Part shown: one piece after another, positions 34,614 through 38,656 of the stretch
Numbering within the stretch: position 1 is the stretch's first letter
How the letters are laid out: each line of letters opens with the position of its first letter
IMG/VR virus record: IMGVR_UViG_3300042261_002385
Coordinates: 1-64,000 of that record
Strand: one strand, 5' to 3'
DNA length: 64,000 nt
Translations under genes and position numbers: made by a program
Notes under the pieces: model-generated
What the model was told of the DNA's origin: nothing
Databases searched by the model: none
What the model saw: the letters and a program-made list of their open reading frames with translations, nothing else

Positions 34614-35203
34614 TAAGCTAATTTAAAGTTTTTTAAGAAGTCTCTTAGGAAAACATTTTTTTCACCTCCAACTATTTTTTTCCATTCTTCATACACTTTT
34701 TTATCCTCTTTTTTGTCAGATGCCTTAATCTGTTGAGCCAACATAAAAGAAGTAGTATAGTAGTCTGAACGGATTAAATCACCATAATTATCGATAACCC
34801 AATCTTCAAAGTCAGGATATTTTTTTCTATTAAAGACTCTTTCATCGGCAATAAAAACTATTGCAGTAAGTTGGTCTCCTAAATCCGGTTCATTAAAAAT
34901 TGCTAAATCTACATTATGTTCTTTAAGTAATTGTAAATGATTATTTAGTGTTCCAAACTGTGAACCATCTTCATTATATTTATAGTTAGTTGTTCCACCG
35001 TTAAGTATGATGAATGTTTTCCAATTATCAGCCCAATCGTCGTAGATTTGAGATGAATTGAGACTCAATTTACTAAGTGAAATTGTCATTTTTACACGTT
35101 GACCATACTCTACGACAGCGTGACCGAATTGTATAGCTTGTTGTATCGGTGAAATGTTGTATGGGACTAATCCATACATTCTAAGTTCTAATTTTTCTTC
35201 CAT
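34613..35203 (-). CDS. peptidyl-tRNA hydrolase 2 (PTH2)-like protein
   Basis: AIQFGHAV, W..KTFIILNGG and FNEPDLGDQLTAI follow the PTH2/PTRHD1 pattern. Confidence 0.6.
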   Translation of the reverse strand: MEEKLELRMYGLVPYNISPIQQAIQFGHAVVEYGQRVKMTISLSKLSLNSSQIYDDWADNWKTFIILNGGTTNYKYNEDGSQFGTLNNHLQLLKEHNVDLAIFNEPDLGDQLTAIVFIADERVFNRKKYPDFEDWVIDNYGDLIRSDYYTTSFMLAQQIKASDKKEDKKVYEEWKKIVGGEKNVFLRDFLKNFKLA

Positions 35204-35242
35204 AGAAATTATATAAAATCGCTACTATAAGTTTTAGATAAT

Positions 35243-35749
35243 TTAATTGGTTTGATTTTTATTTACAAATTTGTTTGACAAGTTTCTATTTCCGAATTGC
35301 TTCATACCGGTGACTTCCATCAATAATTTATCAGAGATAAATTTTGGAATTTTGACTTCAAACTCCATAGAAGGAACTTCAATTTCAGCTACAATTAAGT
35401 GATGTCCATTATTAAAGACATCAACTTCCCATTTTAAATCACCATCTGGATAAATTAGTCTTTCTTTAGAAATATATTTAGACTGAGATACTTTGCACCT
35501 TTCAACAAACTGATTAAATTCTTCAGAAGTGATAATCTTTTCATCTTCTTCATTAATACCAGGTGCAATATTTTTCTTGATAGTGTGAACAAAATAAAAT
35601 CCTTTAACATCAGAGTAACATGATCTGGCTCTTTCCCAGATACCTTCTGTGTTTTTTAAATACCATTGAAATATTTCTATGGTTTCAGATGGTTCACCTT
35701 TTGGTATTGCTTTCAAAAGATATTTTCGTTCAATTTCTATATTCATCAA
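35243..35749 (-). CDS. CYTH-domain (triphosphate tunnel) protein
   Basis: EIERKYLL (ExExK), WEVDVF and LIVAEIE motifs. Confidence 0.85.
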   Translation of the reverse strand: MMNIEIERKYLLKAIPKGEPSETIEIFQWYLKNTEGIWERARSCYSDVKGFYFVHTIKKNIAPGINEEDEKIITSEEFNQFVERCKVSQSKYISKERLIYPDGDLKWEVDVFNNGHHLIVAEIEVPSMEFEVKIPKFISDKLLMEVTGMKQFGNRNLSNKFVNKNQTN

Positions 35750-35774
35750 ATTACTACCTTAAAAAATTAATAAA

Positions 35775-35800
35775 TAAAAAACCCATCCGAAGATGGGATT
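35775..35800 (-). terminator. intrinsic terminator ending the tRNA/ncRNA transcript
   Basis: Minus strand CCCATC-TTCG-GATGGG followed by a T run. Confidence 0.85.
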
Positions 35801-35820
35801 TCAGTACACGTCTGGGTTAG

Positions 35821-35926
35821 CAGCCCGTAGAGGATTCGAACCTCTGTATCCTAATGAAAAGTTAGGCGTCCTCTACGTTCACGAAGTTTCTGTATCTCTT
35901 TTAAGAGTCCACTAGACGAACGGGCC
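35821..35926 (-). tRNA. atypical tRNA-Glu-type gene with ~34-nt D-loop insertion and off-register anticodon loop (CUUUUCA)
   Basis: Acceptor GGCCCGT/ACGGGCT, D stem GTCT/GGAC, anticodon stem CCTAA/TTAGG, T arm AGAGG-TTCGAAT-CCTCT. Confidence 0.75.
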
Positions 35927-35936
35927 AAGTTTTTTT

Positions 35937-36009
35937 AGTGTGGGGTTACAGTACCCACCCTGTCCTCAAGAAGACAGACTCCCTAACTTAAAGGGTAAAG
36001 TTAACCACT
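35937..36009 (-). ncRNA. 73-nt multi-hairpin structured RNA candidate
   Basis: AGTG/CACT closing stem; hairpins CCCT/AGGG, CTGTC/GACAG and GTGGG/CCCAC. Confidence 0.4.
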
Positions 36010-36070
36010 ACGAAAACTTCGTGGTCGGTCTGAGTCTCGCTCTCAGAGGTTCCTATGAACCGACCAAAAA

Positions 36071-36930
36071 AGGTTGAGATTACACCTTTGACGACAGAAC
36101 TTTAGTTGGATTATTGTTTCCCTTCTTATCCACTTCCTTTTGAGAAGTATTCTGTCAGTGACGATTGGTTAGACCAATCACTTCTTGAGTTACTAACTAC
36201 TCTCTACTTATTCCGCTTATTCAATCCTGCCGGACTGATTCGAGATTCGACTCTCTATAATTTTTTCGGTAAAATCACATTGGCCTTTCGAGCTTCAGTG
36301 GCTATGGACATCCCATAACTATGTAGTCACCTTTCATTAGTAACTAGGCGACACTTTCGATTTCTTAATTTTAAATGTTTCCAATTAACAGTTAGAAATT
36401 TAGTGCCTTGTAGATTTGTCGAAGTCGTGGTCACCTCTCAGCTCCCAAAGCTTTTGACCTCAGGAATACTGGACAACTCCGTGTAGTGCCTCCACTACAA
36501 CTCTTTAAGATATCTTCACTACATTTCCCCTGGTAGAGAAAAGAGTGTCAAATAACGACACCACTCGTACATTTGATTGTCTTTCAACTTTAAGACACCT
36601 CTTGAGTTGGATTCCGCAATGATAACAACCGGTGAGTCACTACTTCTTGCAACAATCCTATGGGTTAATCCTGTTCCTCTTCCGAGGTCAACCAAACAAT
36701 CTACAATTGCCTGGTCACAAATCCATTTCATCTACAGTGTTACCCTCGACTAATAAGGTTTTGTGGTGTCCCACTTGCTTACTCGACCTCAAACCCGAAG
36801 GTTTAAGACGCAAACACACTTAGCAATTGTGTTCACTTTATCCCGCTTTCACGGTTTATTTTAAGGACTATAAGCCGCCCTTCTCAACAGTCAGCCGAAA
36901 CCGACTGTTAAAGACTAATATTTCAAAGAA
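36071..36930 (-). ncRNA. large structured ncRNA, GOLLD-like (~860 nt)
   Basis: No credible ORF, GC-enriched, many hairpins; downstream of tRNA-Met; ends GGTGTAATCTCAACC plus a T run; size and tRNA-cluster context fit GOLLD. Confidence 0.65.
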
Positions 36931-36956
36931 CTATGTTCTCCGTTGAGAACTCTTTG

Positions 36957-37029
<73 letters not shown>

Positions 37030-37067
37030 ATGTGTATTTTTATATATCTTATTTCATTTTTGTTTTA

Positions 37068-37099
37068 CAAAGATAAAAACTTTTTTTTAAAAAAACAAA
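37068..37099 (-). promoter_or_regulatory. Bacteroidota-type promoter for tRNA-Met and the large RNA
   Basis: TTTG-N20-TATCTTTG. Confidence 0.8.
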
Positions 37100-37116
37100 T
37101 CTTTTGTAAAATTTTG

Positions 37117-37204
37117 TGGGAAAGGAGTGGACTCGAACCACCGAAGATCTATTGAGACCAGTCACATTACTATGTAACTCCATTTGCCGCTCTGGAACTT
37201 CCCC
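37117..37204 (-). tRNA. atypical tRNA-Tyr-type gene with 8-nt anticodon loop (AUAGUAAU)
   Basis: Type II cloverleaf: GGGGAAG/CTTTCCC, A73, variable arm GGTCT-CAAT-AGATC, anticodon stem GTTAC/GTGAC. Confidence 0.75.
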
Positions 37205-37218
37205 GTCGTTTGTGAATA

Positions 37219-37250
37219 CAAAGATAAGGCAAGTTTATGGTTTTACCAAA
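37219..37250 (-). promoter_or_regulatory. Bacteroidota-type promoter for the tRNA-Tyr-like gene
   Basis: TTTG-N20-TATCTTTG. Confidence 0.8.
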
Positions 37251-37266
37251 TAATTTAGAAAAAAAA

Positions 37267-37776
37267 TTAATTTAATTGTGGAGTATAAGGAAGAAGGTCT
37301 TCATCACCAATGATATTCAGTTGTTTACAAACTTTAATAAAGGCGTCAGCTATCTGGAAAACATCTTCTATGTCTTCAAAAGTAAAAGTGTGTTTTACCC
37401 ACTCTTCTTCATTTTCATGATCTTCAATATTTCTAAGAATACTACCTATATAAAAACCACCATCGTGATAAGCAAATGATAATTGAGCGTAATACTCATT
37501 GTCGTTATCAACAGGCTCTTTAGAAGTTGCATAAAAAGAAATTAATAACGAACCTTCTAATCTTTTAGCGTCTTTTCTAAATCTTGTTAATATAGGATAT
37601 CGAAATAAGATTTTTTTTAATTCACTTTCAGTGTTTATCTTATTGGAGTGTGTATAATAAGATTTCATAGTTTGACTACCAGGTTCAAATTCACCTCTTA
37701 GATTAGGAATTTCTAATCTATCTCTCATCTCTTCATCGTCAAAACCTACTTCTTCATAAAATCTTCTGATTCTCAT
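37267..37776 (-). CDS. hypothetical protein with tag-like N-terminus (MRIRRFYEE)
   Basis: AATATATA at 37781-37788 (minus strand). Confidence 0.7.
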   Translation of the reverse strand: MRIRRFYEEVGFDDEEMRDRLEIPNLRGEFEPGSQTMKSYYTHSNKINTESELKKILFRYPILTRFRKDAKRLEGSLLISFYATSKEPVDNDNEYYAQLSFAYHDGGFYIGSILRNIEDHENEEEWVKHTFTFEDIEDVFQIADAFIKVCKQLNIIGDEDLLPYTPQLN

Positions 37777-37786
37777 AAATTATATA

Positions 37787-38656
37787 TTAAATTTCTGTTT
37801 TATAAATATTTTCTTCTAAATAAGTCAATAGATTTTCAAGTAGATTGTTTGCTCTTTCAAAAAACTCTTTTGTTTTTTTAAAGTTTTTATTAGCCGTATT
37901 ATAGTCGATTCCTCTATTGACGTAAAAAGCCTCAACTAACTCATCTGGAACATAAATACCAGAATATTTTAATTGCATAATAAATGGCATTACTACGTTT
38001 TTAGGATTATGAGCAAATCCATCATCTAATACATCACTGTATGATGGTGGTAATTCTTTGCCTTCATAATCATTGGCACCATCATCACCGTGAACATAAA
38101 AAGCAGCAACTTTTCCTTCTAAATGGTTTCTTAATAAATGATTATGATTTCCAGAACGAGCGAATTTTCCAGTAACTTCTGAGTTTTTTATATTATCATC
38201 ACCCATTAACTTTTTTGCATCACTTATTGTGAGTGTTTGATTAACACAAACAAGTCTATCAAAAAGTAATTTAATTTGAGAAGTTAGTGAGTGCCAATGA
38301 ATTGGTGAAACAACAATAAACGCATCACATTGTTTTAGTAGGTCGTATACACCTTCTTCTTTTAGTAAGTCAGGTTTTTCTGAATCTCCTTTAAAATAAC
38401 AAGAACAGGAAAAGTGACAGTGAAATCCACCTGAAGTTGAGATACATCCTTTACAAGGTTGTATAGTAGGTCTTTTGGATTGATTTACAGATAAATCTAT
38501 TACTTGAAAATTGATAAATGGTGACCATTTTTTTAAAATGTATTCAACAACTTTATGAGTCTTAGACTCCATGTTGGAACAAGTCTCAGGATCTCTTGGT
38601 GAGCCCTGAAAAACTAATACTCGTGGTTTCCAATCCCCTAATTTTCTAATTTTCAT
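37787..38656 (-). CDS. flavodoxin-fold iron-sulfur flavoprotein / NADPH-FMN reductase family
   Basis: FQGSPR, CKGC..CHFSCSC and SPIHWHSLTSQIKLLFDRL motifs. Confidence 0.8.
   Translation of the reverse strand: MKIRKLGDWKPRVLVFQGSPRDPETCSNMESKTHKVVEYILKKWSPFINFQVIDLSVNQSKRPTIQPCKGCISTSGGFHCHFSCSCYFKGDSEKPDLLKEEGVYDLLKQCDAFIVVSPIHWHSLTSQIKLLFDRLVCVNQTLTISDAKKLMGDDNIKNSEVTGKFARSGNHNHLLRNHLEGKVAAFYVHGDDGANDYEGKELPPSYSDVLDDGFAHNPKNVVMPFIMQLKYSGIYVPDELVEAFYVNRGIDYNTANKNFKKTKEFFERANNLLENLLTYLEENIYKTEI

Follow-up and report, generated by a model that had tools for sequence, protein, structure and literature searches.

What is the ORF-poor, GC-enriched stretch at 36071-36930 of a freshwater virus genome, where does it begin and end, and how might its RNA be released from surroundings crowded with tRNA genes? 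The record that holds it is that of a virus of 436,265 bp, with at least 28 tRNA genes within 40 kb of the locus. We analysed its first 64,000 nt (hereafter the window, i.e., the whole stretch of DNA under analysis). An earlier note had read the minus strand at this place as a GOLLD-like non-coding RNA on the grounds of size, context and a resemblance at the 3′ end. GOLLD RNAs are among the largest non-coding RNAs of bacteria or phages, and the cage that they form exceeds the ribosome in size. Members have a structured 5′ domain of about 400 nt, exceed 800 nt in total and occur in phages or prophages, commonly next to tRNA genes. We know of no function for the family.

Identity and domains of the RNA gene

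The Rfam model of GOLLD (RF02032), which spans the conserved 3′ domain only and has a gathering score of 150 bits, matched 36481..36071 on the minus strand with 294.4 bits (E 3.7e-83). The match covered model positions 1-416 of 416 and was not truncated. This strongly positive Infernal result bears out the family proposed in the earlier note. ROOL, the other family to be considered, had no covariance-model match in the whole 64-kb window, and the same Rfam scan at gathering thresholds detected no families besides GOLLD and tRNAs there. A single GOLLD copy is present in the 436,265-bp record. The parts of the gene are as follows.

36482..36955 (minus strand): GOLLD 5′ domain, matched at about 60 loci by an nhmmer profile; 103 RNAalifold pairs
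36923..36955 (minus strand): 5′ leader of GOLLD, with the hairpin GUUCUC-AACG-GAGAAC at 36950..36935 followed by GUUCUUUGA at 36931..36923
36071..36481 (minus strand): conserved 3′ domain of GOLLD, matched by the full RF02032 model
36355..36420 (minus strand): A/U-rich unstructured linker within the 3′ domain, corresponding to unpaired columns of the Rfam alignment
36066..36071 (minus strand): U run after the last helix, read from the sequence and able to pair with the AAAGG run that precedes P27

The features from which an RNA gene had been proposed were recovered. All five listed hairpins are present in the minus-strand sequence, and GC content is 0.39-0.44 across 35850-37050, compared with 0.27-0.33 in the flanks. 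Inside the stretch, only short ORFs of chance size (at most 70 aa) occur on both strands. The 891 nt from 36955 to 36065 folded to -264 kcal/mol against -221 ± 8 kcal/mol for dinucleotide shuffles (z = -5.3), with none of 20 shuffles folding as well. No tRNA was found by ARAGORN within the linker.

Because RF02032 is limited to the 3′ domain, the 5′ half was tested separately. An nhmmer profile of this half matched about 60 other environmental GOLLD loci, and 77 of the 103 pairs in its consensus, as counted by RNAalifold on 51 distinct sequences (alignment A2), had at least one compensatory double change. Judged by these comparisons, the upstream half is a lake-type GOLLD 5′ domain that is widely shared, and the gene is full-length. 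Covariation among homologues, which had been named beforehand as a test of the assignment, is present in the 5′ domain as well as in the 3′ domain.

The leader refines the 5′ boundary. A hairpin, 2-3 nt and then the invariant GUUCUUUGA are kept in 57 loci, and the stem of the hairpin covaries (GUUCUC/GAGAAC versus GUUACUC/GAGUAAC). The span 36930..36071 given in the earlier note was right as to the RNA gene and short at its 5′ start, since the conserved leader begins at about 36955/36950, some 25 nt further upstream. GOLLD proper most likely begins right after the neighbouring tRNA-Met. From about 36955 to 36066, the minus strand encodes GOLLD in full length (about 890 nt), and the genome that carries it is that of a freshwater phage of 436 kb. 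That the locus is a further member of the known GOLLD family, and no new kind of element, is well supported.

The nearest relatives of the locus were found by distant BLAST in LR745206 (634,780 bp) and LR756502 (642,428 bp), with about 72-74% identity over the whole locus; distant mode was needed, as megablast against the phage collection returned a tRNA-Met fragment only. Pattern scans of IMG/VR added more than 120 further GOLLD loci. The genomes LR745206 and LR756502 are those of freshwater and subsurface megaphages (PMC9723777), and their records come without annotation. Both share with the window the same leader and the same tRNA-like neighbours described below. They differ in the first of these neighbours, which is a full cloverleaf with a CUUUUCR loop in the two relatives and a minihelix in the window, and LR756502 differs further in having a tRNA-like element with a D-loop insert upstream of GOLLD where the window has tRNA-Met.

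Promoters, tRNA genes and tRNA-like elements around the gene

The following features flank GOLLD, from its 5′ side to its 3′ side.

37219..37250 (minus strand): promoter-like site P1 of the Bacteroidota type (TTTG, 20 nt, TATCTTTG), by pattern match and sequence; precedes an odd type-II tRNA
37118..37204 (minus strand): odd long-arm tRNA with a Tyr-like GUA core, called by ARAGORN as 'tRNA-??? (agta)' with a 4-base anticodon
37068..37099 (minus strand): promoter-like site P2 (TTTG at 37099..37096, 20 nt, TATCTTTG at 37075..37068), then 'taaaacaaaa'
36956..37029 (minus strand): tRNA-Met (CAU), by Rfam tRNA (63.6 bits) and ARAGORN; abuts GOLLD
36022..36065 (minus strand): element A, a tRNA-like minihelix with a 7-bp acceptor-like stem (GGUCGGU/ACCGACC) on a 5-6-bp stem, the loop AGCGAGA and then A
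35932..36020 (minus strand): element B, with the invariant 20-mer GUUUUCGUAGUGGUUAACUU, three hairpins and CACUAAA; conserved in 7 loci
35821..35926 (minus strand): element C, tRNA-like, with the acceptor GGCCCGU/ACGGGCU, a normal T arm, the loop CUUUUCA and a D-loop hairpin insert of about 36 nt
35772..35797 (minus strand): intrinsic terminator CCCAUC-UUCG-GAUGGG (35797..35782) with a U run, by terminator scan

The promoter type was assessed by comparison among GOLLD loci. The pattern TTG-N17-23-TAnnTTTG, the known consensus of Bacteroidota primary-sigma promoters, was found upstream of the leader in 44 of 55 distinct loci, compared with 6% of random windows. The distance from the end of its -7 box to GUUCUUUGA was 24-28 nt in 39 of the 44 motif-bearing loci. 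P2 resembles the promoters of free-standing GOLLD genes both in type and in the bases that follow, and its box is identical to that of P1. In the window, tRNA-Met is inserted between P2 and the leader hairpin; a tRNA-Met directly upstream of GOLLD was found in four other loci as well (L002, L003, L005 and L008). Counted within the window alone, the Bacteroidota pattern showed no significant enrichment (7 sites versus 3.8 expected, 11 of 100 shuffles being as high), so the promoter claim is based on the comparison across GOLLD loci and not on enrichment in the window. A scan for sigma-70 promoters yielded no more sites than in shuffles and missed the relevant promoter type.

The earlier note had placed tRNA-Met and GOLLD under a shared host-type promoter. 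Their co-transcription is plausible, and we infer it from a Bacteroidota-type box that precedes tRNA-Met, none being present between the tRNA and GOLLD. The occurrence of this promoter type at a fixed distance in most loci suggests that lake-type GOLLD phages infect Bacteroidota, which would narrow the likely hosts and indicate where a culturable system might be sought.

The odd tRNA between P1 and P2 has an anticodon arm that is one nucleotide too long and can be drawn with a 5-bp stem and an 8-nt loop (AUAGUAAU) or with a 6-bp stem and a 6-nt loop. Its homologue in LR745206 (L003 1005-1092) keeps the sixth stem pair with both sides changed, from A-U to G-C. As the extra pair is kept via a two-sided change, the odd tRNA is conserved and not an assembly error. 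A second tRNA-Met (G000 69437-69509) and a canonical tRNA-Tyr are located elsewhere in the genome. The possibility that odd tRNAs are the sole decoders for Tyr, Glu and Lys was ruled out by canonical copies elsewhere in the genome. In the tRNA-Met that abuts GOLLD, position 1-72 is unpaired on inspection (C opposite U), and the anticodon stem has two of the three consecutive G-C pairs; in bacterial initiator tRNAs, 1-72 is unpaired. Unusually long tRNA genes were also seen outside the window, namely a tRNA-Ile of 86 nt (G000:C1 64206-64290), a 128-nt Rfam match at 74781-74908 and an 89-nt tRNA-Lys(UUU) at 75000-75087 (both G000:C1; L130). Having insertions in its tRNA genes may be characteristic of the 436-kb genome in general.

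On the 3′ side, almost every GOLLD end has the U run, and the terminator scan made no call at 36066..36071. The only canonical terminator at the locus is 35797..35782, about 290 nt beyond the U run, and it is likely the end of the primary transcript. The statement in the earlier note that the gene ends in a T run is true of the sequence; transcription probably does not stop there. In most lake GOLLDs there is no flanking tRNA, and a strong terminator follows 40-80 nt downstream.

Elements A, B and C, which lie between the U run and the terminator, are conserved in the huge-phage clade. Element A corresponds to the top half of a tRNA, starts 6 nt after the last GOLLD helix and was not detected as a tRNA by Rfam or ARAGORN. 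Its homologues at the same position in L003 (LR745206), L012, L101 and L004 (LR756502) are full cloverleaves with a CUUUUCR loop, and four loci retain the reduced form, the minihelix. Compensatory changes were found in 7 of 19 pairs of element B (RNAalifold, 7 sequences). Element C fell below tRNA thresholds, with 21.9 bits for its 3′ part versus the Rfam cut-off of 29 and no ARAGORN call. Homologues of element C in L003 (about 2639-2728), L008, L005 and L101 carry D-loop inserts of about 18-36 nt at the same site and of different sequences, and the anticodon-type loop of all members is CUUUUCA or CUUUUCG, with UUU and then a pyrimidine (position 37). Taken alone, the downstream 296 nt folded no better than shuffles as a single sequence (z = -1.3).

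The DUF2693-FD RNA model (RF02926) scored 18.6 bits (E 0.13) at 36065..36023, below its gathering score of 44.5. Element A and DUF2693-FD share their topology and the exact 7-nt loop AGCGAGA, which is a resemblance only. The DUF2693-FD motif may itself be a mimic of a tRNA top half.

The association of such modules with GOLLD 3′ ends extends beyond the huge phages. With a simple detector, an acceptor-on-T-arm module was found in 18 of 71 distinct GOLLD 3′ flanks, compared with 33 of 1420 shuffles. Six of the 18 matches were discounted as chance (A/T-rich), which leaves 12 credible modules in several GOLLD lineages, and all 12 start 5-14 nt after the GOLLD end. In further loci, ARAGORN called true tRNAs 9-19 nt after the GOLLD end. 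In several lineages, tRNAs or their mimics directly adjoin the GOLLD 3′ end at a fixed spacing, which yields a concrete, testable model of maturation.

An ORF of 167 aa (35243-35749, minus strand, start MNIEIERKYLL) comes right after the terminator. Its synteny with GOLLD extends to at least three phages, and in L005 and L101 its homologue is located downstream of their own terminators. The protein matched phrog_6660 (unknown function) only and no Pfam family. A CYTH identity, for which its ExExK-like start was considered, found no support, phrog_6660 being the sole match. A Pfam search of four neighbouring proteins gave nothing for three of them.

The RNA in lakes and its proposed maturation

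The sequence is present in many freshwater and drinking-water DNA runs and in six freshwater metatranscriptomes from several studies. RNA contigs were obtained in all six metatranscriptomes (identity at least 95-99%) and cover about 36083..36904 only. A contig of 733 nt (36172-36904) has 3 mismatches, and further contigs span 36172-36864, 36172-36847, 36433-36887 and 36767-36894. RNA depth was zero over 34800-36053 and 37080-38200, whereas two DNA runs (X1 and X4) gave even coverage over the full 3.4 kb, with depths of about 15x and 11x, so the RNA pattern is not an effect of DNA carry-over or filtering. This RNA evidence consists of contigs from assemblies, in which true ends are not reached and small RNAs are lost. 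In nature, GOLLD builds up as a discrete RNA of about 0.85 kb that lacks its flanks, and it is far more abundant than the neighbouring mRNAs. A stable transcript, another test named in the earlier note, was thus seen in six metatranscriptomes. Few transcripts of such a phage are as plentiful in lakes as GOLLD, and this speaks for a role of importance in infections under natural conditions. DNA depth over tRNA-Met (36966-37079) spiked to 910x and 3518x in the runs X1 and X4; the spikes are due to short contigs of other organisms' tRNA-Met genes and do not reflect the copy number of the locus.

Variation between strains was unevenly distributed. Over GOLLD, strain X4 had 2 SNPs in 832 nt. None was listed in 35750-36092, whereas 35300-35675 had 17, all of which fall within the neighbouring ORF. 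Such a distribution would be expected if the RNA genes were under stronger constraint.

We propose that transcription from the Bacteroidota-type promoter at 37099..37068 would give a precursor composed of tRNA-Met, GOLLD, the three tRNA-like elements and the terminator at 35797..35782. Host tRNA-maturation enzymes would trim the 3′ end of tRNA-Met, which would set the 5′ end of GOLLD, and a cut by RNase P at the 5′ side of the element A minihelix would set its 3′ end. Standard RNA-seq libraries would not retain the small products of this processing; none of the RNA contigs contained the 290 nt that separate GOLLD from the terminator. Taken jointly, the promoter-to-terminator precursor, the trimming of tRNA-Met and the RNase P cut seem to us slightly the better bet. 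The loop of element A (AGCGAGA) is not a T loop, which speaks against processing, and tRNA-type processing is not required family-wide, most lake GOLLDs being without a flanking tRNA. Punctuation by tRNAs is known from mitochondrial transcripts and from MALAT1 with its tRNA-like mascRNA. The GOLLD locus may work like these systems, with RNase P or RNase Z acting on flanking tRNAs or their mimics to define the ends of a long RNA, as an analogy of mechanism and not as homology. For the locus as a whole, we are highly confident in the reading as a full-length GOLLD gene, of which the tRNA-punctuated precursor and the cage assembly are the less certain parts.

The main rival to this proposal is that the 3′ end of GOLLD is formed by intrinsic termination at the U run, with the downstream tRNA-like elements belonging to a separate, weak or read-through unit that has no role in maturation. 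The run directly follows the helix AAAGGU...ACCUUU and is kept in nearly all GOLLD loci, the RNA contigs end within about 12 nt of it and no RNA was seen downstream; these contig ends fit cleavage, termination or rapid decay of the tail alike. However, the helix is A/U-rich, has a 9-nt loop and fails the terminator scan, and the strong terminator 40-80 nt further on in free-standing GOLLDs would be redundant if transcription stopped at the run. Moreover, tRNA or tRNA-like modules begin at a fixed 5-14 nt past the end in several lineages, and no promoter-like site is present between GOLLD and the tRNA-like elements. We therefore regard termination at the U run as doubtful, while giving it serious consideration.

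It is unlikely that the tRNA-like elements are functionless, decaying pseudogenes of the phage tRNA array and that GOLLD merely sits in a tRNA island. Such a history would fit the at least 28 tRNA genes nearby, which include canonical Tyr, Glu and Lys copies and a second Met, the scores of the elements below tRNA thresholds, and the pseudo-tRNAs in or near mycobacterial GOLLD (PMC6582537). It would not fit the finding that phages with a GOLLD of only about 74% identity have the same three elements in an unchanged order, with compensatory changes, nor the minihelix form kept in four loci, nor the absence of SNPs in 35750-36092 between strains that have 17 in the neighbouring ORF. The view that there is no functional GOLLD gene here at all would make the stretch a spacer with hairpins that arose by chance, a disrupted protein-coding gene or a large RNA of another family, e.g., ROOL; it could draw on the short ORFs found on either strand (at most 70 aa). 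It is scarcely credible in the face of a full-length match to the GOLLD covariance model with no other Rfam family, extensive covariation, an abundant discrete RNA and a fold z-score of -5.3.

Returning to the proposed tRNA-punctuated precursor, the repeated tie of GOLLD to tRNAs and tRNA mimics points to a role in translation or tRNA biology. An association of GOLLD with tRNAs has been noted in mycobacteria (PMC6582537) and in the discussion of the cryo-EM paper (PMC12286853), and we regard it as the best clue to what the cage does. A bolder extension is that huge phages have a dedicated tRNA-punctuated operon built around GOLLD. The mimics, i.e., the minihelix, the D-armless cloverleaf-like element and the tRNA with a CUUUUCR loop whose D loop is expanded by a hairpin, would then go beyond marking cleavage sites and serve as partner RNAs, either as cargo or tethered ligands of the cage or as decoys for host tRNA-targeting defences. 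We consider this extension improbable; if true, it would tie the function of GOLLD directly to tRNA biology.

Candidate cage-forming features and comparison with known systems

The structural reference for the family is GOLLD env-38, an 833-nt RNA from a marine metagenome encoded downstream of tRNA-Met, which forms a D7 homo-14-mer cage in cryo-EM (Kretsch et al. 2025, PMC12286853). Its contacts include a kissing interaction between L20 and J13/15, earlier predicted by covariation as a pseudoknot (a 9-10-bp pairing, treated as such in Rfam) and present in env-38 as the intermolecular bridge B7, and the symmetric kissing loops L21a and L21b, the former alternating between GC and CG among GOLLDs (PMC12286853). 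The interior of env-38 contains a disordered linker (PMC12286853). We placed its bridges, linker and loops on the window by model position only, so that the loop numbering is approximate. The corresponding features are as follows.

36337..36345 (minus strand): 5′ strand of a long-range pairing (J13/15 side); partner 36196..36188
36188..36196 (minus strand): 3′ strand of the long-range pairing (L20 side; B7 in env-38); partner 36345..36337
36222..36261 (minus strand): two adjacent hairpins, candidates for L21a and L21b, with the loops GUCGAA and then CCGGCA

In the window, the 9-bp pairing 36345..36337/36196..36188 is Watson-Crick throughout. Among 64 distinct GOLLD 3′ domains, each of its nine positions is paired in 60-64, with many compensatory pair types. 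The loop cores of the two candidate hairpins are self-complementary in the window (UCGA in the first, CCGG in the second); among relatives, the first loop is CGCAAG or GUCGAA, which is the GC or CG alternation published for L21a, and the second is CGCG in LR745206. With the bridge pairing and the loop cores kept, the sequence appears compatible with cage assembly, which falls short of proof. By extrapolation from one homologue, the released RNA would probably assemble into an RNA-only homo-14-mer cage as env-38 does.

The RNA described here and env-38 are alike in length (about 890 versus 833 nt) and in their position directly downstream of tRNA-Met. Both are organized in two domains and have an unstructured linker within the 3′ half; both keep the 9-bp J13/15-L20 pairing and self-complementary loop cores. 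They differ in that env-38 is of marine source, whereas the RNA described here belongs to a 436-kb freshwater phage and has tRNA-like elements downstream.

GOLLD was reportedly first described by Weinberg et al. 2009 in a prophage of Lactobacillus brevis ATCC 367, where the RNA is said to rise during phage-induced lysis. The L. brevis RNA is of the same Rfam family, has the conserved 3′ domain, is phage-borne and is located near tRNAs, as in the window. In contrast, the 5′ domain of the window is of the lake type found at about 60 environmental loci, and its signals are Bacteroidota-like and not those of Firmicutes. Mycobacterial GOLLD lies inside a cluster of 32 tRNA genes, has a pseudo-tRNA within it and shows low expression (PMC6582537). 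It is similar to the GOLLD gene of the window in having tRNA genes on both sides and an associated pseudo-tRNA, whereas the tRNA-like elements of the window lie outside the 3′ end and its RNA is abundant in metatranscriptomes. ROOL is another large ornate phage RNA encoded near tRNAs that forms an RNA-only cage (PMC12286853), but its sequence and fold are unrelated to those of GOLLD.

The literature searched did not mention GOLLD in genomes of this kind (436-642 kb, related to those of the largest known phages). What the locus adds is modest: the occurrence in a huge-phage genome, the expression in the environment, the refined 5′ boundary together with the promoter type, and the conserved tRNA-like neighbours of the 3′ end. 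IMG/VR labels the 436-kb record as a 'provirus' that is 95% complete; the relatives of its GOLLD locus are found in free megaphage genomes.
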